64,000 nucleotides of DNA, taken from positions 13,866,784 to 13,930,783 of the forward strand of contig CM121341.1 of the NCBI GenBank assembly GCA_051530055.1, written 5' to 3'. Position numbers and translations under genes: made by a program. This DNA is from Neoechinorhynchus agilis (taxonomy: Eukaryota; Animalia; Acanthocephala). Each line of letters starts with the position of its first letter. Position 1 is the stretch's first letter. Under the pieces are notes generated by a model. The model worked only from the letters and a program-made list of their open reading frames with translations. It made no database searches and was not told where the DNA came from. This document shows, one piece after another, positions 11,091 to 59,546 of this stretch.

Positions 11091-11099
11091 AACAGAAAG

Positions 11100-11369: not shown

Positions 11370-13145
11370 TTAGAGAAAATCCTTCGATATCATAGAGTTG
11401 CAGATGTGATGATTATAATCCCACGGATATTCGCGAAGAAACCTCGTCATTAATTGTTTTAAGGTTTTATGTACATGTTTTATTCGGGAATATGATCACC
11501 GTTTGTTTGAAGATTGAACTGTTCATTTTTGTTATGGCGGAAAATTGAATTCGGCACAATATTGGGCCTTTGCGAATAAAATGCATTCAATTTTCCGCCA
11601 TAACAAAACATCATGATCACCACAATTCCAACTCGAAGATTTATTATACACAAACAACATCTTCGTTACACCTACACTCATTCGGTAATATCCATAGCAA
11701 ATGGAATTCCGCGTCCAAGGCATTCGATAAGCTCCATAAAAACTATTGGCATATCTTCGCCGAGGCTATCGATCAGCACTTGCGAAAAGGCATCACTGAA
11801 CTGATCATTATCTTTATAGGCCGCAATGACGTCTTTTGCTCGAAACCCACTCACGAATTGGTGCAATGATTTCATTTGCTCAGAACGAGTGCAGCAATCG
11901 CAAAGTCCCTTGTTTCTACGCTTCTTTGCAGCAATGGTTTCGTTGCTATTGTCCTCTTTTTTTATGAGACTGAAAAGCTTAGAAAACCAAAACAGCAATG
12001 GGGATGGGTCAAGTAGTTGAACGTGACCGTTCTCGATTGCTCGGAGCCTTGATTTTAGTTCTTTCATCAATATCGCCTTGTACATCCGAAAAGCGTTCTT
12101 GGTGCAAGAAAAGCTTGTCTCGATTTGTTCGGCTGAATTGCTAGGCAGAATTGTTTGTGGAAGCCATATACTGTCGCTTAGCACAAAGTAGGATAGATCG
12201 CTTAATGTAATCGAAGGGTTGCCTTCAACGATTTTTAGGTCAATTATCTTGTGTGATTGATTAAAACCAAATTTTCCAATTCCCTGAGCTAAGTACGATT
12301 TGACTATACTAAATCGATATAAAGAGAAGGTGTCAATCAAGTATAATGTTCTTTTCTTAATAACACAAATACTATCGATAATTGATCATAATCGATATTC
12401 TATTGCGCTTTCTTGAAAACTTTATTGGTCTGATAATGACGTTTAGGTCTCATGTTAAGATCGATTCCCGAGCGATTGAATAAAAAGACGATATAACTAA
12501 TTAGTTAGCTACGAGTTTTACCTAAAGCAAGCTATAAAGATTTTAAGCAGTCAGATTGGGATTCGGAATAGTTGGTATTGGCAAAGACACTCCATGAACT
12601 TCATAAACCATGCGCTTCTTGTCTTCACTTAACTTCAAAATGTTCATCTTCTGACTAGATCCTCGTTCAATAAACATAAGAAAATCCTTGTCGGCCTTTA
12701 AATAACTGCAACTCTTAGGTAAAGCAATGGGTTCTTGTTCAAGGATTACGCCAGATTTCGTGCTGAGACAGATAAGGAATTGTAATTTAGAGTAACCTTT
12801 TAGACCCATGGTAACAGCAGTTATAGCGTTGGATGCCGTAACTCTTTTTGCCCTTCCAGGGAATACTTGCTTCCACAATTCATGGATCATGTTCGTTTTA
12901 ACATTTATGTGTATACAGTGAACGGCAGAATAGTGCTGGTCGTCTCGCGAGTGCTCACTTAAACAGATATAGCGAGACTCGTTATCATTGACGATATCGA
13001 CTAATTGAGCAATATTACATCGATGCCGAGTGTACCCGCTGACAAATTCGAGCCAATCATCATAATTACTACATCCTGATATAATCATCAAAGATTTGTC
13101 ATTGGAAAAAATAGACGTGTCCATTCGATGGCCGCAGTCAATCAA
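11370..13145 (-). CDS. Uncharacterised multi-exon protein (beta-rich N-terminal half, helical C-terminal half)
   Basis: Two long co-directional ORFs (200 and 220 aa) that can be joined in frame; the 3' end (11678 or 11370) and the start are uncertain. Confidence 0.65.
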
Positions 13146-13277
13146 GAAATCTTCAAAATCGAAGCGTAATCAGCGAAGCCATGCAAAAGAACAGAAATCT
13201 TTTCTTGAGCGTCAAATAACACAATACTAAATACTTGCCGAGAAATCACGTAAAACTTTTTAACTAAAAATATTTTC

Positions 13278-13536
13278 TTTCCTTTCCTTAGTTTTGGCAC
13301 CCAGGGGGATTTAAATTCAATAATGACTTATTTCGAGGTATTTCACTTGTCGGATAATTCTGACATTTCCCCCCCCCAAGGTCTGTCATTTTAAATTGTT
13401 TGGATATATGAGAGAAGTTAAGTTTTTTTTCGCAGTGAGAAGACAAACCTCGAGGAAATGTCGGAATTATCCAACGAAATATCGGAAATAAATCAGTGAA
13501 CTTAATTTTGGGGTGTTAAAACTACTGAAAGGAAGT
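13278..13536. mobile_element. MITE-like element, family B (long TIRs of roughly 85 bp)
   Basis: Left arm ...cggataattctgacatttcc is the reverse complement of right arm ggaaatgtcggaattatcc...; a related copy lies at 58566-58795. Confidence 0.8.
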
Positions 13537-14301
13537 ATCTTTTTCCTCGAAGATAATAATCCAAGATTTTCGTGCCCGAAAGAGCCGATCTTAAGTAGCG
13601 ATTACATCAGATTTGCGAATGAGAGATTCCTTTTTTCCATTTCTTGGTGTTCATTTTTGTAACATCGAAATAATGATATTAAATTGACGTCCACCGATAT
13701 TCCTGCGAAATATTACTTGATTTTCCAGCCGCATTATTGAACAAATTTTTGCGAAAATTGACATTTTTGCCTTTGACTGTTGTAATGAGAGAAAGAAAAT
13801 CTTTATTTTTTAGCTTTCACGATCTTACACGGCTTAAGCTAAGGAATTTTTGTTCAAGCGCGAATAAAACACTTTAAAGATTTATGAGGAATTAAGACGA
13901 GACCAACGAAATATTGGGAATTAATAAATCAATATCTATTCTTTTTTATCACCAAAGAATACAGAGAAGCAGTTTTATATCTCCAACGAATATTATTTTG
14001 AGTTAAACCAAAGCGGAATCCATAGTCCAAAACTCCGATTCTGAATGCAAGGGGAACAACGTCATGATCATGTTTTGCAGTTCTTTCGTTCGATGTAAGG
14101 ACATGTCGCCGAGAGGACTGAAGAATTGATTGGCAGTTTTAACAATTCTTGTAGTCGCATTCGTTGTCGTAGTTTGTGATTTAGTTTTTTGATGATCGGT
14201 TGGTTCGCCAACGAAAAGTTTGTGTTTTTTAATGCTACTACTTTATGATTGATTTGATGTTGCTTTTGTACTCTCACCGCCCATTACGAATTTTTAGATA
14301 A

Positions 14302-17300
14302 ATGACGGCTACGCTTTCCATTGAGCTACTTCAAGAACTGCATAAATGTCTTAACTCAACGAAACGAAAGGTTCTTGAGGAATCCTACGAAGAAATCCGT
14401 CGAGCGGAAAAAGTGCGGGTGCTCGTGGACGTTTGTTGTGTACCCGATGGCACTGAAGAGCCTTCGTTGCAAATAAACTATCAATTACGAAGTTTCTGTG
14501 CTGTTTTGCTTCGTAAGGAATTGACCGATTTTCTAGTAGACGATCCGGAAAGCTATGTTAATCACCTGAGTCGCTTTTTTGCTTACTTTAGGACTCACTT
14601 AGACGAGATGAACGCTTACCGAGAATTCGGACGATCGATGAGTCAGGTTTTTGCGGCGACATTTCTGTTTAAGGATGATCACATTGACGATTTGCTTAAA
14701 TTGATGACCCAGTTTTTAATTGAGTGCCTTGAAGACATTAGAAATCCACAAATAGTTTTGATTGGTTTAGACATTTTTGAATGGAACAGTGGTGCTTTTG
14801 ATGAGTATTTGTCCGAACTGATTGAGCGCTTGGACGCAGCGCTGGCGAATATTCTGAAAAATCATGGAACTGAGCTGGGTGTTCATTGTGCTCGTGTGAT
14901 TGTTTCATTTGTAAAGTACTATGAAGGAAAAATGGAATATATTGGTCAAGTAACTCAGACAGCTATCCCTACCTATATTGAAAAAATCTCATTGAACATT
15001 ATGAACGAAGCGATGACGAGAACGCTTCTTGATCTTGTTGAAGATGAATTCGAGATTGTCAAAGGGTTCGTTGGTCAGATTGGAGAAATCGCGATTGTTG
15101 GAATTCAAAGTGGAAGTATAACAGACGAAGTGCATTGTATTTTGATTGAAGTTCTCGCTGATCTCGCAACAGGTTGGCCAAATGAATTCAATGAGAGTTT
15201 CTCCAGTTTTATTCCAACTATTCTGGCCGACTTACTGAATGTAATTACGCGATCGACATCACAATTCCAATTGGACGAATGGGAGGAGATTGATGATCCG
15301 AACGATGAAGTCGATCCAAATTCAATTTTTGTGACTGCCGAGACTGCTTTGGACCGAATATCTACTAGCATCGGTGGAGATATTATTTGGCCTGTGATCA
15401 ATAGACTTGTCTGGCCTGCGTTAACCGAAATTAATGGTAAAAGCGAACCATTAGACGATTGGACCAAAAAGTACGCGTCCTTATTGGCCATCGGCGTGGT
15501 TGGTGAAGGATGTCTTAATTTAATGGAAGGGAGTCTGAAGGAAATTCTTATTCACATTATCCGAAGTGCCGAATCTCACAGCGAACCGCGAGTTCGGTAC
15601 GCGTTGTGCAACACCGTTGGTCAAATGTGTGAGGACTTTTCTCCCGCTATTCAAATCGATTTTCACGACCTGATTTGTCCTCTCCTGATAAAGTACATTT
15701 GCGATCCTAGCAGTCTGAGGGTACGAACTCATGCCGTTTGTGCTCTTGGAAACTTCGTACAATCCTGCCCCAAGTATATTTTGGGATTATATATTCACGA
15801 GATGGCATCTACACTCTTAGCCGCTGTTCAATTAATGGATCTATCAGGCGCTTTTGGGGAGCAATGTTTTTATTCAGTATATTTGTTTACTCGTGAATAA
15901 CTGCAAACAAAGCATACCAAACCAACGAGCGTCTTTACTATTAATATGGGAATTAACTTTGAAATGTAAGACAAATGAATCGCTATCTGATTATCAGAAC
16001 TTATGAGAAAGTCCTTATCCATGCCATAGTTTTTAAAGCGTGCTTTTAGAAGATTGTACTATTTATACGTTATTGTTTCAGAGCATATTAAACCAAATGA
16101 ACTTTAGGTTTAATTCCGGATCCCTCAAGGCATTAAATAATGCGGGTTTCGTCTACTTCCCAGATAACTAAGAATTTTAAACGAAGTCTTTTCTCGTTTA
16201 TTCCCTGCCATTGGAATAACTCAAATGTAGCCACATTTTAATTGATTAATTTTCTCCTAACAATCAAAAGCACTGATCGATTCGATAGGTTTCGAGATGC
16301 TCAAAACAAGTGATCGGCGTTTACTTCTCGATAATTCCTTGAGCACAATGTCAAGATTAACCGAGCAGTCTAGCAATTTAATGGCTAGCTCCTACTCCGT
16401 CTTCATTCAGACGTTCCATCAGATTCTGAATGAAATAAACAGAGAATTGAATTCAGCCGTAGATTCGGACACTGATAGGATTGATGGCTTAAAGATGATT
16501 CGAGGTCGCGTTTTGGAGTGTATTACTCTTCTTGGTTTGGCTGTCGGTAAAGAGACGTTTATGCGAGACAACACCGAGGTAATCAATTTTCTTCTTAATG
16601 AGGAATCGAATGTGAAAGAAGATACTAGCAACGTTGAAGTTAATTTTCTGATCAATTGTTGGTCAAGATTATGCTCACTTCTAGGTTCTGATTTTTCTAA
16701 ATTTATACCTAAGCTATTGCCGATTGCTATTTCGATCGCGTCATTTAAAACCAAGGTAAATCTAATGGATGATCGTGAAGCTAAAGAATTTTTGGAAAAA
16801 GGCAATGATGTGACTTCAGGATGGTATTGTTTGTCTCTTGGTAAACAACAAAATCTTGCTCTCTCCACGGCTGGAATTGAGCTGAAACATCATGCGGTTA
16901 CTCTTATATGCACCTACTGTATGGAACTCGGATTCGAATTTGAACCATATGTTGAGCAAGTTAGAACGATCATGATTGATGCACTTAGGAAAGCGGACGT
17001 TACTGATCGGCTGTCAGTTCTAGACACCACTTAGGAAAAGGTGTTGCGATTCTTGGTACAAATCATAGCTAGAAAATCATCAGGAGTGATAAAATTTGAA
17101 TTGCGGTGATTATAATCCCCGGGTAAAAGACATTTCATATCAATAACATCACCACAATTCAAACTTGATGCATATGTTTAGAATTTCAAATCGCTAGTTG
17201 CAAGAGCAGTAGTACAAAAATGGACATTTCCTTAGGGTTAAAAAACACCCGAGTTTGGAATTCCGGTTTCGTGTAGATGTTTCTCATGAAATAATGCCAT

Positions 17301-18617
17301 AATCGGGGTTAGGTATCTTTTATTGAAAAATACGCGGTGCTCCTTTTTTGTAGAACACCGTTTTGTACACCTTTTGGCCACTCAATGAACTTTAGTTTCT
17401 CTTCACCCGACTAACTTACGTTCGCTTGCAGTAAAAAAACAGTATTCACCTCCATTAAAACGGCGGCAGCGGAATGTCTGCCTCATTTGCTTTCATGTGT
17501 TAGAAACCGTGAAAGTCTTTGCGAATTGACGAATGAATTCATCCAAGAACTGTGCCAAGCATGTTTTAACGAAAGTGAATACGACGTAAGGTCTGAACTT
17601 ATAGGTTCAATGAGTGAATGCACAGACAAATTTTTTTTCCGTGCCGAGAATGAATTCAACAATCTTAGAGAATGCGCTCTCAAATTGGAAGTTTATGACT
17701 TACTTTTGTCGACACTCGTTTCCAAACTTGACGGATACGTAAATTGTGGAGACAGAGGAGAACCGCGATCGGTTGAGCTTATTAAGATTTCAGATTGTGT
17801 TCATGTTCTGTTCAGATATCTTAAAAACGATTTTCTTGGCAGATTTAAACAAGACTTTTTACCCATTTACCTGAGTCTTCTTACATCAAATCAACCTTCA
17901 TATAACCGACAATGGTCATTGTGTTGTTATGGCGACGTCATATCTTATTGTGGACTTGGGGCTGCATTGGATATAGCTCCTAATATCGTACCGTACATCG
18001 CTCCGATGATTCAGGACGAACATCCGAACTCGAGACAAGCCTCATCGTATATCATTGGCCTTCTTGCACTTGACGTTGCTCCTCACAACGAAGAGATCAA
18101 GCGATTTGTTCAGTCATGTATCCCAGCTCTCCAGTCCGCTGCGACTGGACCTCAACGGCACTCAGCAATGAACCTAATGGCTACCGAAAACGCTGTGAGC
18201 GCGATTGGCAAAATCTTACTCGCTGATTTGGCTCCTAATAGAAGCTCACTGCTATCAGAATGGATACAATATCTACCAATTTGGGCTGATAGTGAGGAAT
18301 GTGAACATGTCTACTCGTTTTTATGCGAACTTATCGACCGGAGAGACCCGGTTGCTATGGGTGGACAAGATGAACCCAATCTACCGTATTTAATCCGTCT
18401 TATAGCCGAATGTCTTCTTCGTGAAGGTATTGACAGAAAAGAGAATACCATTAAGAAGGTAGCCCGTCTATTCGAAAAACTTTCTAGGGGAGAACAAGCT
18501 CAATGGAATTCTTGTCTTGCTGTGTTGAACGACCGTCATAAAACAGCTATAGACCAAGCCGTCGTTGATGCATCGCTGGTGGCCAACAAAGATCAATGGG
18601 AACATCAGAGAAAATAA
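14302..18617 (+). CDS. IPO5: Importin-5 / karyopherin beta-3 (HEAT repeats), interrupted by two TIR-bounded inserts
   Basis: AETALDRI, EPRVRYALCNTVGQMCEDF, RVRTHAVCALGNF, RGRVLECITLLGLAVGKETF, TAAAECLP, RQASSYIIG, ATENAVSAIGKI, LPIWADSEE motifs across three ORF blocks. Confidence 0.93.
15833..16287. other. TA-flanked, inverted-repeat-bounded insert 1 in the IPO5 coding sequence (453 nt removed)
   Basis: Left TAATGGATCTATCAGGCGCTTTTG vs reverse complement of right TATCGAATCGATCAGTGCTTTTG (18/24 by hand); excision leaving one TA gives CAA TTA GGT TTC GAG ATG in frame. Confidence 0.8.
16986..17433. other. TA-flanked, inverted-repeat-bounded insert 2 in the IPO5 coding sequence (446 nt removed)
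   Basis: Left TAGGAAAGCGGACGTTACTGATCGGCTG vs reverse complement of right TACTGCAAGCGAACGTAAGTTAGTCGGGTG (21/30 by hand); excision gives CTT AAA AAA ACA GTA TTC and corrects the frameshift. Confidence 0.82.
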
Positions 18618-18819
18618 ATGGCTGCTTCAAACCGTCATCAAAAGTATGAATATTTTTGAGAAATGCATTCAGATTCTTACACTCGAATGGCTATTTTAAT
18701 CGTAATCAATAGCGATTACGCTACGGTGCGTCGTACCCTTGTTTTATTTCATCTTCTTTTCGATAAGGGCGAAAGGAACCAATCATCAACTTGTATTCTT
18801 AAATAATTAATCTGAAAAA

Positions 18820-22596: not shown

Positions 22597-22666
22597 CGAT
22601 CTAGAATGGTCGTCATGGCAACATGATTGACTGCGGTGAGTCTTTTAACAATGTTTCGTGAGGCAA

Positions 22667-23880: not shown

Positions 23881-23904
23881 ATAATCTCAAAGCGTGAAAA
23901 ACAA

Positions 23905-35893: not shown

Positions 35894-38800
35894 TGATGTA
35901 AATAACCTGGCAAAATCCACGAAAATGCTCTGGAATTCGTCCACTTAGCTAATTTTTATTTGACGGAACATAAAGCACGAATAAGAGGCTCAAAAAGTTT
36001 TGTGAGCATATATAAAGGATGCATCTCATTAACTGTCTTTTTAGCTGGCAATCACACTTGACAATAGTCTCTAAGGCGAAAGTTTCAGTTGTTAACAGAC
36101 TTGGACGTGTAGTGGATGCATGAGGGGAAAACTTTATGCAGCACCAAAAAACTGACAGCTTGTATACTTTCAATTATTAGCAAATTTCGTTTAAATAAGA
36201 TGGATAAACAGACGCATAATATAGTATATTATAATGTCCTGGTAATTCGCAATAATCGAACCGCTTTCTTGGATGACCGATTTGTACGTTCCTCCGATTC
36301 CACTCATTGAGATTTTTCTTAGATTATTATTATTATTCTTGAACGATGTTAGATTTTGCATTATTTTAAGAGCGAACAAAGGCGTAAATACTGAATGGTA
36401 AGGCATATACAAGGCTTTTATTTGTAGTCTTGATTGAAAAAATTGGAAAGACCAACGTGATATTTGCTCATATTATTCGGTAAGTTTTAGTTAAATATCA
36501 TGCAAGAATGTCCCAACATCGGGTTTTACTCCAATTAGTCTATAATGCATTCTTTCAATCATTTTCAGTAGAGTGATTTGTCTTGAAAGGGGACGAGCTT
36601 TTAAAGGTACAAAATGGAAAATCAAATGCTGACTTTTTCACACTGCATTTGTTTGCTGGAACACATTACTTTGTATCATAGAGAATTGTCGTCGGGGTGA
36701 ATTTGATTCGAGTTTGGCGATGTTTTTCCCCCGGATTGTTGTTGGTGTTGATTATTTATTTTAAAATATTTCGTAAGCATCCTTAGCGATTTCCAATCGA
36801 CAGGAGAAGGAAAAACACCGTATGGACTTCGGACAAGCATCAATAATACAGGCTGAGGCTAATTTACGAAGGAGATTGGTAATGGAGGCAATATACATCA
36901 CAGGGAATGTAAGCATGGAGGGTAACAAAGCGAATCATACGCTAGTACTTCCGAAAATTCTTCACAAAATAAAACCAAAACGTTAGATCACCGCAGCTTG
37001 TACGTCGAACCCGCGCATCCACGCCTATAGTCCAGTTTTGACTTTAGCTTAATTTGTAGACATAACTGAAGAGGTAAGCAAAAAACTTACGATATATTTT
37101 AAAATAAATGATTAACATCAACAACAATCCGAGGGAAAAGCATCGCCAATGTCGAAAAATTACTTTGTGTTCGCAAAACTCTTCGTTCGCGGAAAATATA
37201 TGTTGTTGTGTAGATATCCATTTATGAAGTAATTATGATGGTGAACTGAAGGAAAAAAATTATGAATATATTAATCAGAATTTTCGACCAATGCGTTGGT
37301 CTTCTTCAGTGATTGTCAGGAGAGGAAAATACAAGTAAGCTTTGTCAAATGTCTATGGATTTTTTGAATTTATCTTTTCAGACATAAGGAATCGTGAATT
37401 TTATTCGTACTATGGAACGTGAAACTAAGCGGATTTCCATCGCTCATGGTTCATGTTTGATAGATTTTCTCATGAAAATGCTTTGCAGATTTTCTAGAGC
37501 TGAAACAGTTCTTTAAGGAAATTAGAGTGCGTCCCATTTAGCATCATTTAATAAGGTCAGTTTGTTCCATGGTCATGTTAGGAAAAACTTATCATTTTTG
37601 AATTAGTCAAACGGACAAAAATCAGTCTATTAAAAACGGAATGGGGAAATTTTGTTCTTAGTTAAAAACGAACGCTATCAAAGTCATTGTATTTGCGTTT
37701 CATCAAATTTTTACACCATGCTTGATTTGAATCCGAAGCGATCACTGAGAAATAGTTTCCGAGCCGTGTTATTCATGCTGTTGAAAACTATATTTAAAAA
37801 ATCTAATGTTTTCACTTCCAATATCGCTAATAATAAAATCAAAGTTCCCGCAATATGAATTAATGTCTCTCTAAGGATCAAGATATAGCTTTCTCCGTGA
37901 CCCTTATACCACCGTAAGGGATTTACTTATCTTGTGCGTTTTGTCAGCGTCTAGCCATTTTGCAAACACCCACATACAACACTGTATGCACTTGCATAAG
38001 ACGAGTGGGAAAACAAGACTGTAGCGTTTCACATCTCGAAAGGTGATGTAAATAACCTGGCAAAATCCACGAAAATGCTCTGGAATTCGTCCACTTAGCT
38101 AATTTTTATTTGACGGAACATAAAGCACGAATAAGAGGCTCAAAAAGTTTTGTGAGCATATATAAAGGATGCATCTCATTAACTGTCTTTTTAGCTGGCA
38201 ATCACACTTGACAATAGTCTCTAAGGCGAAAGTTTCAGTTGTTAACAGACTTGGACGTGTAGTGGATGCATGAGGGGAAAACTTTATGCAGCACCAAAAA
38301 ACTGACAGCTTGTATACTTTCAATTATTAGCAAATTTCGTTTAAATAAGATGGATAAACAGACGCATAATATAGTATATTATAATGTCCTGGTAATTCGC
38401 AATAATCGAACCGCTTTCTTGGATGACCGATTTGTACGTTCCTCCGATTCCACTCATTGAGATTTTTCTTAGATTATTATTATTATTCTTGAACGATGTT
38501 AGATTTTGCATTATTTTAAGAGCGAACAAAGGCGTAAATACTGAATGGTAAGGCATATACAAGGCTTTTATTTGTAGTCTTGATTGAAAAAATTGGAAAG
38601 ACCAACGTGATATTTGCTCATATTATTCGGTAAGTTTTAGTTAAATATCATGCAAGAATGTCCCAACATCGGGTTTTACTCCAATTAGTCTATAATGCAT
38701 TCTTTCAATCATTTTCAGTAGAGTGATTTGTCTTGAAAGGGGACGAGCTTTTAAAGGTACAAAATGGAAAATCAAATGCTGACTTTTTCACACTGCATTT

Positions 38801-40193
38801 GTTTGCTGGAACACATTACTTTGTATCATAGAGAATTGTCGTCGGGGTGAATTTGATTCGAGTTTGGCGATGTTTTTCCCCCGGATTGTTGTTGGTGTTG
38901 ATTATTTATTTTAAAATATTTCGTAAGCATCCTTAGCGATTTCCAATCGACAGGAGAAGGAAAAACACCGTATGGACTTCGGACAAGCATCAATAATACA
39001 GGCTGAGGCTAATTTACGAAGGAGATTGGTAATGGAGGCAATATACATCACAGGGAATGTAAGCATGGAGGGTAACAAAGCGAATCATACGCTAGTACTT
39101 CCGAAAATTCTTCACAAAATAAAACCAAAACGTTAGATCACCGCAGCTTGTACGTCGAACCCGCGCATCCACGCCTATAGTCCAGTTTTGACTTTAGCTT
39201 AATTTGTAGACATAACTGAAGAGGTAAGCAAAAAACTTACGATATATTTTAAAATAAATGATTAACATCAACAACAATCCGAGGGAAAAGCATCGCCAAT
39301 GTCGAAAAATTACTTTGTGTTCGCAAAACTCTTCGTTCGCGGAAAATATATGTTGTTGTGTAGATATCCATTTATGAAGTAATTATGATGGTGAACTGAA
39401 GGAAAAAAATTATGAATATATTAATCAGAATTTTCGACCAATGCGTTGGTCTTCTTCAGTGATTGTCAGGAGAGGAAAATACAAGTAAGCTTTGTCAAAT
39501 GTCTATGGATTTTTTGAATTTATCTTTTCAGACATAAGGAATCGTGAATTTTATTCGTACTATGGAACGTGAAACTAAGCGGATTTCCATCGCTCATGGT
39601 TCATGTTTGATAGATTTTCTCATGAAAATGCTTTGCAGATTTTCTAGAGCTGAAACAGTTCTTTAAGGAAATTAGAGTGCGTCCCATTTAGCATCATTTA
39701 ATAAGGTCAGTTTGTTCCATGGTCATGTTAGGAAAAACTTATCATTTTTGAATTAGTCAAACGGACAAAAATCAGTCTATTAAAAACGGAATGGGGAAAT
39801 TTTGTTCTTAGTTAAAAACGAACGCTATCAAAGTCATTGTATTTGCGTTTCATCAAATTTTTACACCATGCTTGATTTGAATCCGAAGCGATCACTGAGA
39901 AATAGTTTCCGAGCCGTGTTATTCATGCTGTTGAAAACTATATTTAAAAAATCTAATGTTTTCACTTCCAATATCGCTAATAATAAAATCAAAGTTCCCG
40001 CAATATGAATTAATGTCTCTCTAAGGATCAAGATATAGCTTTCTCCGTGACCCTTATACCACCGTAAGGGATTTACTTATCTTGTGCGTTTTGTCAGCGT
40101 CTAGCCATTTTGCAAACACCCACATACAACACTGTATGCACTTGCATAAGACGAGTGGGAAAACAAGACTGTAGCGTTTCACATCTCGAAAGG
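35894..40193. repeat. Head-to-tail tandem duplication, 2 x 2150 bp (35894-38043 and 38044-40193)
   Basis: Identical text and ORF translations at an offset of exactly 2150; no differences seen by eye. Confidence 0.97.
36790..36930 (+). mobile_element. Penelope-like GIY-YIG endonuclease C-terminal remnant (second copy at 38940-39080)
   Basis: HRMDFGQASIIQAEANLRRRLVMEAIYI pattern. Confidence 0.6.
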
Positions 40194-40207
40194 AAAAAAT
40201 ACTACAA

Positions 40208-42179: not shown

Positions 42180-42212
42180 GTGTTCATTAATTACATGACG
42201 TATAATTTTAAT

Positions 42213-42452
42213 AAGTATCTATGTGCGGCCTTTTGCACAGTTGATAATTTTCATTGGGCACGCGTTCCCACCGATCTGGTTCAGGGAAGGGCATAAAATC
42301 ACTTAATACCTTGAAACATACGGTTATGAGTTTGTACATTCCTCCGGAACCAGATCAGTGGGGCTGCGTGCCCAAGGAAAATTATCAGCCGTGCAAAAGA
42401 CAGCACATAGATGCTGAATAAAAAAAGTTACCGGCTGGCCAGTCTTCAAAAA
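42213..42452. mobile_element. Hairpin element family A (about 70-bp inverted arms plus 3' tail)
   Basis: Arm tatctatgtgcggccttttgcacagttgataatttt... pairs with ...aaaattatcagccgtgcaaaagacagcacatagat; flanked by tataa(t/c)tttaat direct repeats. Confidence 0.8.
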
Positions 42453-43920
42453 TATAACTTTAATCTTCGCATAATGGCTTGGCAGGAAAAAGAACCGGTT
42501 TTGATCACCGAGAATCTTGGATTAAGACTTTCAATGGCCAGTTGTTTTGAACTTAAAAAGATGCAAAATAATTGCGTTCCGCATAATCCAGAAAAAGAAA
42601 ATTAATTAGTTCAAATCATTAGGCTAATAAATTTTCAACCGACATCGATTCGCAATGTAGGTGATTATTTAATTGGTGGTGAACGTAATTCAAGTTTGTA
42701 CAAAGGATTCCTCACCCGTCGTTAGCGAACTAACCGTGTTTATCGGCAGATTGCTATCATCTAATTAAATGAAATCGAATCCGCAAAGGAGAGTTAGTCG
42801 ATGATAATGCCCGGCGACTTCTGAATTTTAATTAGCGTAGTTTTTGATCATTCTTCAATAATAGAATATTGATTATCTATTCTTCAATAAGGTCTACCTG
42901 CGCAATGCCGGATAAACTGGGTTGTTAAGAGTAAACGGTAATTAATTTCTGAGTCATGGTATCAAAAGTAATAAGTTGAAAATAAGATTATTGCTCAGCA
43001 AATTAAATTTGTGAACAGGATACGAAATCTAATTCTCATGATTCCATAAGTGAAGCCATTGAAACTAATTCAATGGTTTTCTTTGGCGTCGAGTAAGATT
43101 TTCTGTAACATGGTTTTAAATCTTCATTTAGATTTTAAGCACTGATATTGATTGTAGGCGATGTGTATTCGATAATGAACTAAAGAACAAAGCATTAACG
43201 TCAAAGCAAGAACCATGAAGTGTAGTTGTGTTACGTTTCGTTCATATTGACGAAGATTTAAGCACCTCGTTTATAATGTTATGAAGTTAAAGTATTCTTG
43301 AATAGTTTTTATTCGCACAACAATATGTTTTGGTGATTTATTTATCAATGCAAAATAGAAAGATTATCCAAAATGCCGCATGAATTTCTGATTATTACAG
43401 AAAGACGACAATTTCGCATTGTTGTGGTAAAAGATAATAATCGATAAGATAGATGTCCTTAAGTAAAAATGTATAAAGTTGATTATGCCATGGACATTCG
43501 TTGTAAAATCACGTTTCTGAGGAGAACGTTTTGATTAGTCATCGAATAATGGTCAACATGACCGACCAGACTACGAATATCGGTAAACCAATTTGCGCCG
43601 GGAGTGGATGACGGGTCCGTTCGGGTTTGAAAGTTTGTGGTTCTTGTTTGAAGGGGAGTTTGCTAGGTCGACACCTAAAGAAGAATATAAATCATCAGAC
43701 TATTCGTCATTATCTCGATTTTTTACCCTCTTCATGTATTCATCCCATATTCAACTTTGCTCCCTACGACCGAAAACTTGACTTCTGGGCGGAAACGAGC
43801 TCCCGTGCCCACGGCAAATCATGGATGTGATCACCTTATGTCTCCTTTCGCTAAATCACATTGAAATTGGCAAAGGATATGTTTCTATGTCTTGGTCGCA
43901 ATTTGAGCGGTTCAGATTCT

Positions 43921-44152
43921 TACATCCCCTGCTCGACTTTTTGGCATGAAGCCACACCGAATTCTTACATCAGAGAAGTGATCGAACCATTTAGCCTCTT
44001 ATGCATACGGTAATGAGTTTCTACATCTCTCCGGATTCTCAGATACCTCCAGGAGGCGGGATTTATCAGTGAGTTTCCACCCTTCCGTTGTATTACTCTC
44101 TAATGTAAAAGATCGGTGTGGCTTCATGCCAAAAAACCGAGGAAGGGATGTA
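43921..44152. mobile_element. MITE family C, TA-flanked, TIRs of about 50 bp (Tc1/mariner-like)
   Basis: TAcatcccctgctcgactttttggcatgaagccacaccga vs reverse complement of tcggtgtggcttcatgccaaaaaaccgaggaagggatgTA. Confidence 0.85.
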
Positions 44153-44159
44153 ATAATCT

Positions 44160-45330
44160 CAATCAATAGTGCCGGCTTGCCAGTAACGTTTGAGAAATAA
44201 ATGCGGTTGTTGATTTTGAAGAAGATTGCGGGTTCGGTCGGGTGGGAATATTCGGTCATGGAATGTGGTGGGAAATGGTCTTTTAGCTTGTAGGAGAGTT
44301 TGCGAGGTTGGGTATTTCCTCAGGTTCATTAAGGAGCTTAGATATAGGGGGTGCGAGTTGTAGGAGGATGAAATGAATTTGGATCACGAGTGTTGCGCTC
44401 CTGCGAAAAAGGGGAATAAAATGTGGTGAAAATTGTGGTGGCAGTGTTGAGAGAGTTTTGATATGCATTTTGTTAGCGGGGGGAAATCAACTGTGCAAAT
44501 TTAAGACTCTTCTATGAAAGGTTTCAAGACGACGATTTATGTTGCAAATACGGGGTAACCGTAGTTGGGGGATGGTAAGATACAGCAGAAGTTAAATTTG
44601 TAGAGATCGGGCGAAGGGATTCCTAAATGTCGGATGCGTTTGAGGAGATAAATTTTAGAGGTGTTGAGGTTGAGGGAGAGAGTGATGTGCGAGTCTCATT
44701 TCAAATTTGATTGAAATTGGAGACGTGAATTCTTAGGGAGGTGACTCGTAGGATGTCATTTTTTTTTTATTCTCGAAATTACTTTTCTTTACATTCACCA
44801 CCTCCCACCAAATTCCAGCTTTTGTCCTTCCTCGACCGTCGCCATCACGCTGGCAACATTGCCCCGTTGTACTGCCAGCGAGATATTTTGTCGAAGAAAT
44901 AAGCCTGCTCTTGAGTCTCCGGTTGCCTGATGGATGTAGGGTTGCGCGAGAATGAGGGGATCGCTTCGAAGCTTTTTGAGAAGTTCAGATAGAATTTGTG
45001 ATTGGTGCAGAAATCTTTGACGTGGATGATTTCTTTAAATGTTAAGGAGAGGGAGAGGTTGGATGATGATTGAGTGATGAGGGTGAGATCGTCGGCATAT
45101 AAGAAAAGTTTAGGGTCGGAGAGGTTTGAGGTCGTTTAGGAAAATATTAAAAAGAAGTGGTGACAACACAACACCTTGAGGTACTGCTCTGATGAGGGAT
45201 ACTTTAATCGGGGAGATAGCCCGGCAGTGAATGTATTGTTGGCAATCGTGAAGATAAGAGACCAGGCAGTGGATCTGCCTGCCACGCGTTTGGACCGAAA
45301 TCGGAGCAGGCCTGGAGTAGTAGTAAGTTG
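44160..45330 (-). mobile_element. Decayed CR1/L2-like LINE reverse transcriptase and C-terminus
   Basis: AVPQGVVLSPLLFNIFLNDL, KLFLYADDLTLI, IYLLKRIRHLGIPSPDL, RLETFHRRVL with frameshifts. Confidence 0.9.
44757..44975 (-). mobile_element. 5'-truncated CRE-clade element with poly(A) tail, nested in the LINE
   Basis: ATGDSRAGLFLRQNISLAVQRGNVASVMATV followed by aataaaaaaaaaa; the host LINE reading resumes on both sides. Confidence 0.85.
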
Positions 45331-46048
45331 TCTACGCACAAGTGATACTCACAGTATTGAAATTCATGTATGTGATACATTATCTGGCTTAGGTGTTCAG
45401 TTTATATAAGTAAATTTGAAAATAACATCTTGTTAGCTTACCTCAAAATTTAAACATTAAACTTAAACACGTTTTGATTATTTACCTTGTTGTTAATATT
45501 TCATTTCAAAAACAGTAGCAAATTTTCGTCAATAGGCTCTTAATCTATAGTGTTCAGCTATGCTCAGTAAAATCATTCAGTTATTAACAAGCAGTATTTA
45601 GATTTACCATGCTTTCTCCGCAATGTTTATTATCATCGAACTTCGAGGTATGATAGATTTAGCATTTAAATCGATATATGAAACCGAGTATGGTGTTTCT
45701 TTTTACTGCATGCATTGTGCGAAAAGGGAGTAGAATTACACTAAATGGAAGATCTCACAATGCTTGTTGATCCGGAAATATAGTCCATATTGTTGTACGA
45801 AAGAGGAAATAAAGTGGCGATTGCACGGATTATAATTCTGTTAGATTAGTTATGATACGTTATGCTCCATATTATCCTAATCTTAAAATTTCTGAGACAG
45901 TGTTTCGATTTGAAATTATTTTAAGGCCAGTGTCAATTTAAGGTTATATTTTGCCTTGTTATCTTTTCTATATTAGAGAATTCGTGGCTCGTGTCGATTT
46001 CCCCGAAATGAGCAGAATGAAGTGATTGGGAACATATAAAACTAAAAA

Positions 46049-47933
46049 TCAAGGGCTAATCAATTTATTCTCAATACACTCACGTTCATGCAAGTTCCAA
46101 AGAGCAGTAACAAGCTCACACAGTCCGATTTTGCTAGTATTTTTTGACATGATCCTTAAGAGAAAGATCCCATCGGTTTTCAATGCATCATCAATGAACC
46201 TGCTGATGCTACCACGTTTGATGTCCGAACCGTAGTCGGAGATAATAAGATGTGAGTGAATGAATCGTCTTCTACTCCATGGGAAACATATACACCACAG
46301 CCATATGAGAATAGATACGATGGTTAGGACAAGAACAACACTGTACCAGAACCATATAATGATGAAAATCTTTTCGTTGAACATATTCACGGGTAAAACA
46401 CACTGAACTGTATGTTTATGATTATTGTCAGCTAAATTGCGAACAATAAAGTCACATAGCGTGACCCGGGGAAATCTTTTATGGATGTTCCATTCTTCTC
46501 CATCAATAATGTTTTTTAAGAGATCGTAACCAAGTGTGGCGTAGCTCTCACCAATGACAAATTTTAAGCTGTAAATTAGCCCGGAACAAATAACAACATA
46601 TTGCCAAAACACGGGATTACAGTCTGGCTCCAAGCAACGGAAAAAGGTACAATTATTATATAGAAAGCATACTCAAGAGAAGCGATATTAACAGTTTTAA
46701 CTACAAATAAGCAGCATATCAGGTAGTCCAGAGTGCGTCCTAAAAATGGAACCACTTAAATTCCCGATTGCGTCGTATGTTACATTAATCGCCAGGGACT
46801 ACATTTTTTCATAGATTTTCACCTATATCCCTAGAAGTTGGAAAAATCCCACTAAGTTTATTTTGAGACTAAATCCCGTGCGTTGGTTTAAGCGAATTTC
46901 ATGGATAAATAGGCAGTTACTAGTGAAACCGACGTACTTGTGCTCGGCATTATTCGGGCGAAAAGTAGGTTTAACCTCTGTGTCGGGTCTAAAGCCAGGA
47001 AACGTACCCTTTGATTATTCTGATGATGAGCATAGAGTGCATTGTCGATATAGATGGCAGCGTGATCGATTGCTTCAGTCTTGACATCGAAATCAAGCTC
47101 GTCAAAATTGTCGACGGAGCGAGCAATTAAACTTAAATCAAATCCCTTTCTTTGGAGAAAATTGTGCCATGCTACACTTGGCAAGTAAAATAAGAGTGCC
47201 ATACATGGCAAGATGAATGGTACCCATTGATAGTATGGAACAATGTTTCGACTTTGATGACTTAGAGCATATGTGTATGAAATGATTTCGGAACCGGAAA
47301 CAGTGAAGTCGGTATTTAGGAAAAGAACCACATTAGAATATACAGTTCTCCATTAATTATGGAAAAGAATTACTGTGCTCTTGGATAAAATATTCACGAC
47401 TAAACAGTTTTTTGGAATGAAAGCAGTAGGTAATTTTATAGAACTCGTCTCTTAGCCGGTTGTCATTAAACATTTATGATATTTTAGATCTATTATAAAA
47501 ATGCAAAAAGCAGGATTGTAAATGTTTAGCGCATGCCTGATCGCCATTAATCAGCACTAATAAGGGCGGGTAAAAATGCCAAATTTTTTCAATAAAGCGA
47601 ATCCCGGTATTTCAGACACATATACGATAAATGATCCGTGTACCTGGATGCATCTAAGGAAAGTTCATTACCATTATGTCCACAATGTACAAGATTGTAT
47701 GAATTGGAAACCCAGCAGATATAATTCGCATATTCAACATGAGCTCCCGTGAACTGAGCTGGTGTCCAGCATGCGATTGGATCGCCTACATACTGCTTCG
47801 TACTGATTATCACAGTGAACAGCACAAGCAGTAGGACTGTGTACCGTCGACAGATTTTATCGAATTGGTCATCATCACAATTACACTTAAGCTTTTTGAT
47901 TTTTGTAATTGCATCAAGGAAACCAGCGACCAT
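46049..47933 (-). CDS. Innexin (gap-junction protein), interrupted by TIR-bounded inserts
   Basis: DDDQFDKICRRYT, KQYVGDPIACWTPAQFTGAHVEYANYICW, YYQWVPF, RFPRVTLCDF, TVQCVLPVNMFNEKIFIIIWFW. Confidence 0.96.
46599..46890. other. TA-flanked, inverted-repeat-bounded insert in innexin TM3 (290 nt removed)
   Basis: TATTGCCAAAACACGGGATTACAGTCT vs reverse complement of the other end TAAACCAACGCACGGGATTTAGTCT (20/27); excision turns GCT TAA into GCT TAT GTT (LVTAYLSMKFAYVVICSGL). Confidence 0.85.
47270..47624. other. TA-flanked inverted-repeat element at the first innexin ORF break (353 nt)
   Basis: Ends share TATGTGT(C/A)TGAAAT; excision gives TCG TAT GCT in frame, but a canonical CAG|gtacac...taag intron also works. 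Confidence 0.6.
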
Positions 47934-53187: not shown

Positions 53188-53443
53188 TATGCTTTGTTGT
53201 TCCAGACCAGCAGAGAATCCGATGGATTGTTTCTTTCTTATATGTTTTGTTGCGAAGAGAGAGTTGTAAATGCACGAAGAAACAGCAAAGTTGAGTGATC
53301 GTTCGTTGCAAAAGGTCGTGGATTTATCCTTTAATAATTCGGCTAAATCCACAACATTTTTTCTCCCTGATAAAGACGCGATGCTCTGCGACTTTTGTTT
53401 CAATCTCACGAAATTATTGGCTTAAGCTTTGAATCGTTTTTAG

Positions 53444-54583: not shown

Positions 54584-55730
54584 AAAGTGGTTGCTCGCGA
54601 TGAACAAGTGTTTTAGTATTGTTGCCATGGTTTAGTTTTTAGTCGTTTTGTATCATTCATTTGTTGATTATGCTAAGATTTATTGTATATTCGCGATAAG
54701 GTGAAACTGAAGGTGCTCCAAAATTCCCTAGAGTAGACCAGTCGTTTTAGAAATCGGCAATGATCGCATTTAATTTCTTAAAAACTAAAGTCGTTTTCGT
54801 TTTTGTTGCTCTTTTTTCCATGAACTTTAATCCGTGAATTGGTGTGGACAACGACCTTGCGAAGCAGCCGAATTGATACTCCAATCTTCTATTGACCTTT
54901 AAGATCGAGATGAACCAGAAATTTTGAAAGTTGTAAATTTTAAATACGTCTTAGTTTAGTATTTGCCATTTAGTTAAAAAATCGTTATTAAATTAAAACC
55001 GTGTATATGTTCTAATTCAACAGTTCCTCACTTGTAGATATTAAATCCAGGCTTGCATCAGCATATAAGATTATGGTAAAGACGTTTTCTTTTTTCGTAC
55101 TGTCGACTTAATCCCCAGTAAAATACTACGGCTATCGCAGCGCTGACAACGATGCTAAGCTAAGGTTTCTTAATCTTCTGAAATGATTTATCAATATATG
55201 ATTTTAGGTACTTGAATCTTAGAATTTGATGGATGAAAATCAGGAACGGTCGATATTTTCTTAAAAGAAGTTGAAAACTAACGATATCAATACGGCGAGT
55301 TAGTAATCTCATTGTACACGCCACTTAATGGATAAACGATGCGAATTTAAAACCCGCGCTTTGGAACTAAAGTGTTGAAGGCTGCAAAGAATAGAATCTT
55401 TCTCCAAATTTCCTTTTGGGAACGCATCAATTCAACCTCGGGCAGTTAATGCATTTCGACTCGATCGGCGAAAGTACCCTAAGTATCTTGCGTCTCCTCA
55501 AAAATTGTAATTTTTTAAAATTTTCATCAAAAAACGACTAAGTGAATTTCAGAAAACGTGAAGAAATTTTACTGCTCGTATTCTCCTGTACGCTTGAAGT
55601 AAAAATTACAGATGCAAATTGTTTAATTTTAAAGCAATTGAAAATTTTCTAAAATGATTAGTTTGCTCTTAAGAGCTTTTAGTAAAAGTAAAACGAGACT
55701 TTAATATATTAAGTTGCTAATGCTCGACGG

Positions 55731-56780
55731 TCAATGTCGAACTTCAGTCGTAAGATTTCCCTCGAGTAAACTTACTAGACGTTGGCATTGACGATTGATT
55801 GTTTCGCTTTTCTTTTCCGAATCTGTATCATCTATGAAATGCCTTAGCTGTTCTACATGCCGACTGTGTTCTATAGTCACCACTGGAACATTTATGTATT
55901 GACAAAATAAGTCAAACTCGGACGAAGGTTGGAACACATCTATATGTGTGCCACACTGAGGACATTTGCAGGAAGAGCAATTAACAACACATCCTACTAC
56001 TGGTAGATTTAGTCTTTTGCAAAATTGGAATTGTCGTTTGACGTCGTCCGTTGAAATGCGATGAGCATGAGTGAAGAGCGGGATTTCCGAAAAAACAAGT
56101 TTAGGATAAAGGAATCGACTACTTTTACGTCAGGATGTTTCATATAAAGAATTCTGCTGGTCGTCTTTTGGAAACCCTCGTTCATTTACGAGTATAACAG
56201 CCGTTGGTTTTACAAGACCTGCCAGTGTAATGTGTTCATCACTTGTTCCTGGTGGCGTATCAACGACCATATAGTCCAATTCTCCCCAATCTACATCAGC
56301 GACGAGTTGTTGAAGAAATCCATTTTTACGTGGACCGCGCCATATCAATGCATCCGACGGTTCAATGAAATACTGTGAAGACACAACAGCCAAATTTTCT
56401 TTCACCATGACCGGAGACCAACCTTTGGATGTCTGGTAGACGTCGTTATCAGTCGCATTTAAGAGCTGAGGTATGTTAGGTCCACAAAGATCACCATCGA
56501 TTATCCCAACAGAATGCGATTCATCAGTAGATAGGCCGAGGGCTAAGAGGGTAGCTATAGTGCTTTTGCCAACACCTCCTTTACCGGACATAACCATGAT
56601 TCGATTTTGCCAAGCCGATATCGTATCTTTTATTCTCCTTAACTTCGCCGGATCGTTGTTAGATTGAGCTGATGCGCATTGTTGGCGCGATGGACATCCT
56701 TCACAAGCAGCAGCTTGACCTGGTAATCCAGCACTAGGATCTGAACTTGGACATGCGTTGGGAACATCATCTGTTGACAT
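55731..56780 (-). CDS. NUBP1: Cytosolic Fe-S cluster assembly factor NUBP1/Nbp35
   Basis: N-terminal four-Cys cluster (C..CEGCPSRQQC), MSGKGGVGKST, DGDLCGPNIP, IWRGPRKNG, VDTPPGTSDEH, CKCPQC. Confidence 0.93.
56066..56185. other. In-frame, stop-containing, inverted-repeat-bounded insert in NUBP1 (117 nt, ATG direct repeat)
   Basis: TGAACGAGGGTTTCCAAAAGAC vs reverse complement TGAAGAGCGGGATTTCCGAAAAAAC; removal gives AVILVNAHRISTDDVKRQ, colinear with the recalled AVIITTPQEVSLQDVRKE. Confidence 0.72.
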
Positions 56781-56900
56781 TTGAATAATTTGAGACAAAA
56801 ATGCAAAATCTGAAGACAATCTGAAGGAATTCCGGAGCATATTCGCCATTATGATAACTAAAGGAAACATAATTTAATGCGTTCAAATTAAAACTTCCGT

Positions 56901-59546
56901 CTATTCAAATTGTGTTACAGGTCTCCGTAACTTTGATTTATAGTCAATAAAGAGGGTCTCCATACACACAACCGCCACACATTGTTCTGCTTTCGACTTT
57001 GATGTATGCCAATTGATCGTAGTGTAATTCGAATCCAAAAAGCGTAGCTTAGATTTGAATACTCTTTCAGCCTCTGACTTTTGAATTGTCGAATATTCTG
57101 GTTTTTGCAATCCATGGGCATTAGCATACTCACTAAGAACCGTTTTCGGGTTGCATGTTTTCAAATGCAAACTTCTTTTCATCGATCAACAATAATCGTT
57201 AGTTCAGATGAGCAAGGTATCAAACCTATCGTACACAACGAATAGTTGCACAACTTCAGGTTCTTCAGACATAACTGAGTCTTTATCCCTACTAAAGATT
57301 AAGGCAGACATCCTCGTGTCTATAGGCACATAGTCCGGTGTATTGACATCGTATTTGCGACTAAAGCGTTGTTATACGATTAAGAATTTTTACGTAAATT
57401 ATTTTCGAAATGGCAATAGAGCCTAATGTGTATATTTTCAGGCTTAGAATATCGTTTTTCAATCCAGCTGAACAATGGTTATTCGCTAAGGTTTTTAAAC
57501 CCAAAAGTGGTATAAAAATCCAACAAATAAACAGTCAGAACCGCATAAACCCTTTTTGTTGTTGGGCACAAACTTCCGAAGTAACCATACTACTTAATCT
57601 AGAAAGAAAAAATCTTACCAAATATCCAGAATCGAAATGCCCATTCCAATACCAGCAGCCAGCGTATGTTCATTTTCGAAAGCTTTAAAATGTTTTAAAT
57701 TATAAGCGACATCGCTTGCTCTCAGATTTAAGTTTATAGCGTGGCGTAGAAATCGTTCAATAAGCTTATTTCCGTCGTCAGAAGATCCAAAGACGGCAGG
57801 GTTTTTTCGTGCCGATCTACCGATCATAACACTCAGTCCTTTGTTCTTTTCCATATATTCAACTAATTGTTGATGCCTTTGAACGGTATTTGAAACTCCA
57901 TTGATGGTTAAATTAAAATTTGGAAAGATATTATATAGTTTTTCAAATATTTGTTCATTGCATGGCGTTCTGTAACTTTGTTCAGGTGTGCGACCGTGCA
58001 CCGTAAGTCTACTTACTCCAGCGTTGATCAAACTCCATACAAATTCAATCGTTCGTTCATCCTTTTATAAAAACGATAGAGATTATGAAACAAAACAGGT
58101 AAAAAGACGCACTTTTTCAAATATTCGTATTTTGCACGAAACAGGAATCTTGAGGTTATTTACTTCAATGATGTGATGCTGAAAACGTAGGTCGAATTAT
58201 GAGTTTTTGTGAAATATAGGAGACAAATTCATTGTCAAACCTTACGGTCGCATCACATACGTTCTCTCTGTACAGCAGTTAAGATGGACCAAAGGGACGA
58301 AAGAGAAAAGAAGATCATCAATAGAAAACCTCGGGTATAAACAAATTAGAATTATGATGAGCATACTCTCGGGCATGACATATTTTATTGATTTGAAATA
58401 TACGAACGAGGTAACCTTGCCCTATCAGTCATTTTTTGTACGCTTTTACGGCGAAAAGGCGAGGTTATCTCGTTTATTATTTCAAATAAATAAAATATGT
58501 CATGCCAGGGAGTATGCTCATCGCAATTCTAAGAAAAAGAATTTTTCGCCTAATAAAAGGAGAAATTTTCTCTTGGTAGATTTGCATCCCACGGATTTAA
58601 ATTCACTGAATTATTTCCGATATTTCACGTCGGATAATTATGACATCTCTTCAAGGTTTGCCATAGCCTACATATTAGAAAATTTGTGAAACAATGACAA
58701 ACCTCGAGGAAATGTCAGAATTATCCGATGTAAAATATCGGAAGTAAATCAGTGAATTTAAATCCCATGTGTGGCAAAATTACCAAAAGAAAGTATCTTT
58801 AAGACAAATAGGAGAAATGACAACATCACATCATTCATCGACCAAGTTTTCAACAATCTAAATTCTGAAGTTTACGAAAAAGATTTAAGTATTTATAAGA
58901 GTAAACCTTCACTGCAAGGTCAGGTGTCTTCATTAATGCAGATCCCATACCAGCCTAGAAGATAATTAGAGCTGATTCGTTACGAAGGCGCAGAATTTCA
59001 CCAACATGAGTTGAGAACGGCTTAGGGCATCCCATATTAACATCGATACCAGCAACGTCGTTTTCACTAAAAAAATAAATTACAGAAGGAGACAAAGAGC
59101 AAGTGAACCTACACAATTTTGGCTGCTTTCAGCGCATGATCAGGATCATTGGTTCCCTTTTTAACGACAATCAAAATTCCTTTAAATCATGAGAACTAAC
59201 CAATTGTAAAATAACTCGATCTCGCTCATGCTCACAAGTCTGAAATAATATCTTTCCAGTCTTTGCAATCACAAAATTAACAGTTTTTGTTTCCTCTATA
59301 AAAAACGTATAGATCTCAAATGCATAGGTTTTCTCAATATTAACCATCAAATATCCTCGTACAGCACAGCAACGACTTATCGATTATTTCCTGGTCGAGC
59401 AAGGACGTAAGACAAACATTTATATTTCCACTAACATATGTATAAGCCAGATCAGCCCCATAATCCAAGACGGTCAAACGAAACGGAAGCGTTGAAGCGC
59501 GGACCATTGGTGCTGCAATTTTGGCTTCTCTCTTGTGTACATACAT
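56901..59546 (-). CDS. DUS2: tRNA-dihydrouridine(20) synthase with C-terminal dsRBD
   Basis: AAPMVRASTLPFRL..LDYGAD, GIDVNMGCPK, GMGSALM, IPVSCKIRI, LTVHGRT, VMIGRSARKNP, dsRBD PKTVLSEY...SKSKAEQCVA. Confidence 0.94.
58162..58842. other. GT-flanked, inverted-repeat-bounded insert in DUS2 (679 nt removed)
   Basis: Both ends carry T(G/C)AATGATGTGATG(T/C)TG; excision gives IVENLVNNLKIPVSCKIR, colinear with the recalled ILSTLVKGTRRPVTCKIR. Confidence 0.78.
58566..58795. mobile_element. MITE family B copy nested inside the DUS2 insert
   Basis: Long inverted arms; right arm gacaaacctcgaggaaatgtc.gaattatcc is shared with 13441-13500. Confidence 0.8.

Follow-up and report, generated by a model that had tools for sequence, protein, structure and literature searches.

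Transposon-like inserts in coding exons of three conserved Neoechinorhynchus agilis genes and their possible removal from RNA

In a 64,000-nucleotide (nt) stretch of the genome of the acanthocephalan Neoechinorhynchus agilis (GenBank assembly GCA_051530055.1, contig CM121341.1, positions 13,866,784 to 13,930,783; hereafter the window), we found that coding exons of an innexin gene, IPO5 and NUBP1 are each interrupted by a short insert whose ends form an inverted repeat and whose homology-defined borders are not GT-AG. Our tentative explanation, drawn from the DNA, is that the three are insertions of the miniature inverted-repeat transposable element (MITE) type, near fixation in the exons and most likely removed from the RNA at or next to the element borders. 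An earlier interpretation of the same DNA (the sequence-only reading) had proposed five such non-GT-AG inserts, and all five interruptions are present at roughly the positions and sizes it gave. Precise deletion is the best or near-best solution for the innexin insert, the second IPO5 insert (IPO5-2) and the NUBP1 insert, whereas the first IPO5 interruption (IPO5-1) and that of DUS2 are predicted to be ordinary GT-AG introns. The weaker candidates that it also listed (for example 11678-13145) have no detectable homologues.

At each site every in-frame, stop-free deletion near the break was built and its product scored with a hidden Markov model (HMM) of the family, made from homologues without N. 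agilis; homology-defined borders are those of all deletions no more than 2 bits from the HMM optimum. Three true GT-AG control introns lie 0.6, 3.5 and 5.8 bits below their own optimum. Because these controls lose so little, the distances of the best canonical junctions from the optimum at the three inserts, 13.5 bits for IPO5-2, 13.6-19 bits for innexin and 15.4 bits for NUBP1, are outliers, two to three times those of the controls. Introns in DUS2, ClpP, mtIF2, an innexin paralogue and several small genes are GT-AG and mostly 45-60 nt long, with a few long ones of 380-1500 nt, and the anomalous interruptions amount to about three among 20 or more introns in the window. Position +5 is a purine in all 15 confident donors of the window and a second-chromosome locus, and +6 is a T in 11 of them, donors being otherwise weakly conserved beyond the GT. 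Terminal inverted repeats were also scored in three canonical long introns, all of which sit at the null mean.

The innexin insert is the strongest of the three cases. Its first codon is an in-frame stop, TAA, and the TA-bounded deletion of 46890-46601 scores 420.4 bits, the first of 4562 in-frame deletions, against 406.8 bits for the best GC-AG junction, 401.2 bits for the best GT-AG junction and 390.2 bits for the GenBank model. With the Pfam Innexin profile the precise deletion reaches 289.3 bits versus 264-276 bits for alternative junctions. The product of precise deletion aligns gaplessly to the Pomphorhynchus laevis orthologue (P0090), a protein that is continuous across the insert site, over YLSxKxxY and through AYLSMKFA/YVVICSG...LKFVIGESY. 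The residues encoded up to the insert, YLSMKFA, match P. laevis YLSIKLV without a gap, and because of this gapless alignment the exon must truly extend to the insert. No GT occurs between the conserved YLSMK and the stop, and all GT-AG options remove the conserved YLxxK segment; the 407-nt GT-AG intron of GenBank model P0089 (46975-46569) deletes transmembrane helix 3. The GC-AG option keeps YLxxK and places nine foreign residues in that helix. The two repeat arms, of 21-22 nt, match at about 87%, and their end-anchored score is reached by none of 3000 random segments.

IPO5 of N. agilis is strongly divergent (26% identity to homologues). Its roughly 1140 codons have only two interruptions, ancestral introns apparently having been lost in this compact genome. 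At IPO5-2 the TA-bounded deletion scores 524.8 bits, against a maximum of 525.3 bits, ranks fourth of 2453 and brings back the six-residue spacing of human IPO5. Imperfect inverted-repeat arms lie at about 16991-17013 and 17404-17427 (p = 0.005 with fixed borders), and the ends of the insert pair in an RNA fold whose overall energy is not unusual. A canonical GT-AG intron can be drawn within the insert, and its product, at 511.8 bits, falls 13.5 short of the optimum. At this site the human IPO5 alignment is interrupted between matched stretches, and the site probably corresponds to a loop between helices.

In NUBP1 the highest-scoring of 5413 deletions removes 114 nt (324.1 bits) and has a direct repeat of 1 nt only. 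The sequence-only reading had drawn this insert as 117 nt bounded by ATG (56069-56185), a deletion that ranks 34th at 318.8 bits, some 5 bits below the optimum. The inverted-repeat arms GAACGAGGGTTTCCAAAAGAC (56163-56183) and GTTTTTTCGGAAATCCCGCTC (56076-56096) have p = 0.005-0.008, and the ends pair in an RNA fold, again of unremarkable overall energy. Against the precise deletion, the only in-frame GT-AG alternative, of 57 nt, scores 211.1 versus 222.9 bits with Pfam and 198.1 versus 213.8 bits with NCBIfam. Its donor has a pyrimidine at +5, a type seen in none of the 15 confident donors. GenBank leaves this intron unused, its model P0206 ending at the stop within the insert, and the N-terminal open reading frame (ORF) alone is not an annotated product.

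The remaining two interruptions behave differently. Spliced at GT-AG, the DUS2 product is gapless against human DUS2 (PDB 6ezb) across the 728-nt intron and the neighbouring junctions. The terminal inverted repeat that had been claimed for this interruption is absent (score 5 versus a null mean of 7), and its hairpins are palindromic elements at 58346-58532 and 58561-58798. At IPO5-1 the canonical junction, at 529.6 bits, outscores the TA-bounded 453-nt version (15835-16287; 525.9 bits) and lies 4.6 bits below the maximum of 534.2 bits, within the range of the control introns. The assertion that GT-AG alternatives are damaging at every insert thus holds for three, which lose 13-19 bits, and fails for DUS2 and IPO5-1. 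A TA-flanked inverted repeat at IPO5-1 has p = 0.014 in a free scan, and the intron may be derived from a transposon, with no unusual removal required. The fit to homologue spacing was discarded as support for an insert at IPO5-1, the homology around the site being too weak. The palindromes of the DUS2 intron belong to a MITE-like family of about 190-260 nt, which has a further member at 13278-13540 and a fragment on another chromosome (L006 13204-13255).

Table 1. Coordinates of the interrupted genes, their inserts and the introns compared with them (window positions).
Feature	Position	Strand	Remarks
IPO5 coding region	14302-18617	+	three long ORFs broken at two sites only; split into two genes in GenBank
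First IPO5 interruption (IPO5-1), predicted GT-AG intron, 471 nt	15826-16296	+	
Second IPO5 insert (IPO5-2), 446 nt	16986-17431	+	TA on both sides, second TA at 17432-17433; in-frame stop at 17032-17034
Canonical GT-AG intron within IPO5-2	17013-17431	+	donor GTCAGT; branch-point-like ACTAAC about 19 nt upstream of acceptor TTGCAG
Innexin coding region	46049-47933	-	GenBank model P0089, 364 amino acids
Innexin exon insert, MITE-like, 290 nt (element plus one TA)	46601-46890	-	second TA at 46599-46600
Innexin insert, 3' inverted-repeat arm AGACTGTAATCCCGTGTTTTGG	46604-46625	-	end-anchored repeat score 23
Innexin insert, 5' inverted-repeat arm CCAACGCACGGGATTTAGTCT	46866-46886	-	pairs with 3' arm in minimum-energy and centroid RNA folds, z = -2.67
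Innexin control intron, canonical GT-AG, 383 nt	47261-47643	-	part of GenBank model P0089; 3.5 bits below HMM optimum; terminal-repeat score 9, at null level
NUBP1 coding region	55731-56870	-	C-terminal third (55731-56118) is an intact unannotated ORF with the conserved CxxC motif
NUBP1 exon insert, 114 nt (homology optimum)	56072-56185	-	in-frame stop at 56130-56132; hairpin ends
Sole in-frame GT-AG alternative in NUBP1, 57 nt	56119-56175	-	308.7 bits; donor GTTTCC; 20 extra residues would remain in the P-loop NTPase core
DUS2 interruption, predicted GT-AG intron, 728 nt	58179-58906	-	AAG/GTTTAC...TTTTCAG/CAT; two nested palindromic elements inside

With the borders defined by homology, chance would seldom produce inverted repeats such as those that end the three inserts (p = 0.0025 for innexin, 0.03 for IPO5-2 and 0.005 for NUBP1). 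The arms begin 2-5 nt inside these borders and are about 76-87% identical over 21-24 nt, and a Fisher combination of the three repeat p values with J1 gives about 1e-5. TA flanks both sides of the innexin and IPO5-2 inserts, as it does the TA-bounded version of IPO5-1. A direct repeat of 2-3 nt is uninformative alone, dozens of in-frame deletions per site carrying one, and we dropped it as evidence in itself, such repeats being available at most positions. The border registers read TA-AA, AA-AT and AA-TA in innexin and TA-AG, AG-GT and GG-TA in IPO5-2, with a 3' AG only in IPO5-2 and a 5' GT in none. U12-type introns have AT-AC or GT-AG borders with the donor consensus /RTATCCTT; the in-frame AT-AC pairs that we listed all miss the optimum and lack the U12 donor motif. 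The window contains no Rfam match.

The ORFs that flank the inserts are intact and conserved, with no further frameshift or stop downstream, the CxxC part of NUBP1 included, which bears out the earlier view that the host genes show no other decay. Two of the three inserts lie in essential single-copy genes. The sequenced DNA is a pool of about 50 worms, assembled mainly from Oxford Nanopore and Illumina reads (PMC12690905), and since the consensus of this pool carries the inserts, they are majority alleles. As majority alleles in essential genes with intact flanking frames, they must be neutralised somehow. A contrary explanation is that they are simply retained, in disabled alleles, in decaying gene copies or in a haplotype with the insertion that the assembler selected, with working copies elsewhere. 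Innexins are indeed a multigene family, with a 40%-identical paralogue on another chromosome, and the GenBank models stop at in-insert stops at IPO5-1 and in NUBP1. However, our searches returned no second IPO5 copy and no innexin copy beyond that paralogue, and the best 150 NUBP1 hits hold one N. agilis-like protein. Because the pooled consensus carries the inserts and the ORFs downstream are conserved, dead alleles are unlikely, and we consider retention quite improbable.

We propose that the innexin, IPO5-2 and NUBP1 inserts are small non-autonomous DNA transposons of the MITE type, fixed or nearly so in exons, and that, as young introns of transposon origin, they would most likely be neutralised in the RNA. 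Pairing of their inverted repeats would draw the two borders together, and excision would occur at or beside the element borders rather than at GT-AG. Because the element borders are not GT-AG, this amounts to non-canonical splicing of the kind found in Fritillaria, Amoebophrya and euglenids, for NUBP1 and innexin at least. In IPO5-2 the GT...ACTAAC...CAG intron supplied by the element may serve instead, leaving 27 nt in the mRNA. That the inserts are removed, that this happens in RNA and the exact positions of the cuts are all points that we infer.

Several observations weigh against removal at the element borders. Non-canonical splicing systems are very rare in animals, and in-frame GT-AG or GC-AG alternatives are present for all three inserts. 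The intron at 17013-17431 in IPO5-2 is the one annotated in GenBank model ACOME3_003283, where the 27 nt that stay in the mRNA encode RKADVTDRL. NUBP1 has neither a clear target-site duplication (TSD) nor TA at its borders. BLAST searches with the inserts found no second copy of any of them in the window plus 23 kb of another chromosome (about 87 kb), so that they are at most candidate members of a repeat family; this is 0.19% of the genome, and families of fewer than about 1500 copies would be missed. Exact protein look-ups with 18 candidate spliced products, which covered precise and canonical variants for the three genes, gave the GenBank innexin model as their sole match, in a collection without transcript-derived proteins of N. 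agilis. GenBank-model failures at the inserts are weak evidence, because plain GT-AG introns in DUS2 were missed by the annotation too, and we withdrew them as a strong argument against canonical splicing. Finally, the rarity of the repeats depends on borders fixed by homology: when scanned freely, those of IPO5-2 and NUBP1 are non-significant and are matched in 18-25% of random regions, which bears on the question, raised by the sequence-only reading, of whether such repeats are equally common at random positions.

Non-canonical splicing at the borders and splicing at cryptic GT-AG sites appear to us about equally likely. The latter supposes the same transposon insertions and the ordinary spliceosome only, using cryptic GT-AG or GC-AG sites that lie within the element or close to it, and as an account of all three inserts it is plausible yet doubtful. 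The mRNAs would then add 9 residues to IPO5 and 20 to NUBP1 and would rebuild or delete transmembrane helix 3 of innexin, changes that a fast-evolving parasite might tolerate, with the innexin copy perhaps impaired. Insertions of the Tc1 type into exons can be removed imprecisely from RNA through nearby GT and AG sites, a known precedent being the cryptic splicing of Tc1 in pre-mRNAs of C. elegans. Each of the three sites offers GT-AG pairs that are in frame and free of stops; in IPO5-2 the GTCAGT/ACTAAC/TTGCAG combination ends exactly at the element end, is used by an RNA-seq-guided GenBank model and falls at the presumed loop where the human alignment breaks, and the 57 nt of the NUBP1 candidate are a typical local intron size. 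These options are nonetheless costly. Their products score 13.5-19 bits worse, versus at most 6 bits for controls; the GTTTCC donor of NUBP1 departs from all 15 confident donors and is unannotated even though its use would gain about 110 conserved residues; and innexin would lose YLxxK or receive the nine foreign residues in its helix. Three such harmful insertions fixed within 47 kb would demand very weak selection.

The same free-scan frequencies would be expected if nothing special had occurred, that is, if the sites combined ordinary introns and lineage-specific protein insertions with chance repeats and TA pairs. Two of the five original cases, DUS2 and IPO5-1, were resolved in just this way, short direct repeats occur at most positions, and the proteins are highly divergent, as the identity of IPO5 illustrates. 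We nevertheless regard this explanation as improbable: the innexin stop is the first codon of the insert, with no GT after YLSMK and a repeat score unmatched among the random segments, the homology-fixed repeats are significant at three sites and absent from control introns, and the canonical-junction gap exceeds that of the controls by the factor of two to three given above.

The TA borders also recall the internal eliminated sequences (IESs) of Paramecium, which likewise lie in coding sequence between two TAs, have degenerate inverted repeats at their ends and, when removed exactly with one TA left behind, restore the gene. IES removal is DNA excision in the ciliate macronucleus by a domesticated PiggyBac transposase, and Neoechinorhynchus has few, giant somatic nuclei. 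IES-like programmed excision of TA-bounded, hairpin-ended inserts from the DNA of such giant polyploid nuclei, the assembly representing a germline-like version, would suit two of the three inserts, whose exact removal restores the gene. We consider it very unlikely. The TA-bounded ends read TAAAC and TAGGA and lack the Paramecium end consensus TAYAG, NUBP1 is without TA, and to our knowledge neither DNA elimination in Acanthocephala nor precise intragenic DNA excision in any animal has been reported. The source DNA came from whole worms, egg-filled females among them, which would favour such a mechanism, but the assembly has a k-mer completeness of 96% and the account of it in the genome paper makes no mention of a second set of junctions (PMC12690905).

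The term new system, which the sequence-only reading put forward for these inserts as candidates, goes too far: non-canonical introns of MITE origin that bear both inverted and direct repeats have been described before, in Fritillaria, Amoebophrya and euglenids. The closest animal match is Fritillaria borealis, whose non-canonical introns are MITE-derived (Henriet et al. 2019, as summarised in PMC11282704). On that summary, the likenesses are a compact animal genome, breaks in conserved genes (species-specific ones in Fritillaria), inverted repeats at the ends, borders other than GT-AG, a likely MITE origin and coexisting GT-AG introns. In Fritillaria, however, splicing is proven by transcripts, AG-AC and AG-AT are the commonest borders and GT-AG is relatively rare (PMC11282704), whereas the three border pairs of the N. 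agilis inserts share no dinucleotide pattern. The closest anatomy is that of the introner elements of Amoebophrya, which have inverted repeats of 8-20 nt near the intron ends, direct repeats of 3-5 nt over the borders and no fixed dinucleotides, and on which standard gene predictors fail (Farhat et al. 2021, PMC7789003). Amoebophrya differs in being a parasitic dinoflagellate, with non-canonical introns making up more than 60% of those that RNA-seq supports and with elements that group into families (PMC7789003); in N. agilis the direct repeat is either TA (2 nt) or lacking, and the 87 kb showed no family. Non-GT-AG borders and inverted repeats, the features common to the Fritillaria and Amoebophrya types, are found at all three N. 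agilis inserts, and a direct repeat at two of the three.

Resemblances to other systems are more partial. Stowaway-like MITEs of the Tc1/mariner type share the TA duplication (two of three inserts), short terminal inverted repeats (TIRs), a length of a few hundred nt and the lack of an ORF; their exon insertions are normally mutant alleles, whereas the N. agilis inserts are majority alleles in essential genes. Strict introners (Micromonas, Aureococcus, dinoflagellates and others; Gozashti et al. 2022) are likewise DNA-transposon insertions that make introns, with TIRs and TSDs at their ends. They have GT-AG or GC-AG borders, formed from one splice site of their own and one from the TSD, and many similar copies, neither of which is seen for the N. 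agilis inserts in the roughly 87 kb searched; since the borders are not GT-AG and no family is seen, strict introners are no match. The introner survey, which covered 3325 genomes, reports two animal groups only and does not mention rotifers or acanthocephalans (Gozashti et al. 2022). The nonconventional introns of euglenids likewise have borders of a non-canonical kind, TSD-like repeats and a stem at the ends, beginning a few nt within each border, but belong to a protist lineage; their stem positions are fixed (+4 to +6 and -8 to -6) and their excised product is circular.

Were transcripts joined at the element borders to exist, the splicing of transposon-derived non-GT-AG introns would be known from a second animal lineage, Acanthocephala, and for the first time from a protostome, which would bear on the origin of new introns and on how far the spliceosome can relax. 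It would bear as well on the split, chimeric and truncated gene models and the low scores for benchmarking universal single-copy orthologues (BUSCO) of acanthocephalans; in the window the IPO5 model is split, that of NUBP1 is cut short and fused to DUS2, and that of innexin is deprived of one helix. Were splicing confined to cryptic GT-AG sites, the loci would still show transposons turning into introns and adding peptide segments to conserved proteins. According to the genome description, public data include RNA-seq of 74 N. agilis worms and long genomic reads, gene models were made by BRAKER with RNA-seq guidance, and metazoan BUSCO orthologues stand at 54.9% in the transcriptome versus 47.1% in the genome, which is 46.2 Mb in size and 31.6% coding (PMC12690905). 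The supplement of that paper contains no information on splicing (PMC12690905).

Annotation errors in the window extend to canonically spliced genes. Between 55731 and 59546, a 452-residue BRAKER model in GenBank joins the C-terminus of DUS2 to the N-terminus of NUBP1, and the N-terminus of DUS2 is called as a separate 113-residue gene. The innexin paralogue, on CM121342.1 (L006 10270-11775), has a canonical intron of 1506 nt that encloses a separately called gene of 107 residues, possibly a transposon remnant.

Hairpin elements are dense throughout the window, with 37 inverted-repeat pairs in the 64 kb. Long non-coding hairpins with arms of 24-80 nt that are 78-100% complementary lie at 11527-11608, 42206-42423, 43911-44162, 59787-59926 and 60796-60916. 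A tandem duplication of 2150 bp spans 35894-40200, and identity between its copies is 100% across at least 300 nt (35894-36193 and 38044-38343). Both copies contain the same two small ORFs, and in each a pair of inverted repeats of 71 nt is present (36707-37156 and 38857-39306). The GC skew, in windows of 2 kb, reaches its extremes at -0.285 (10001-12000) and +0.263 (44001-46000).

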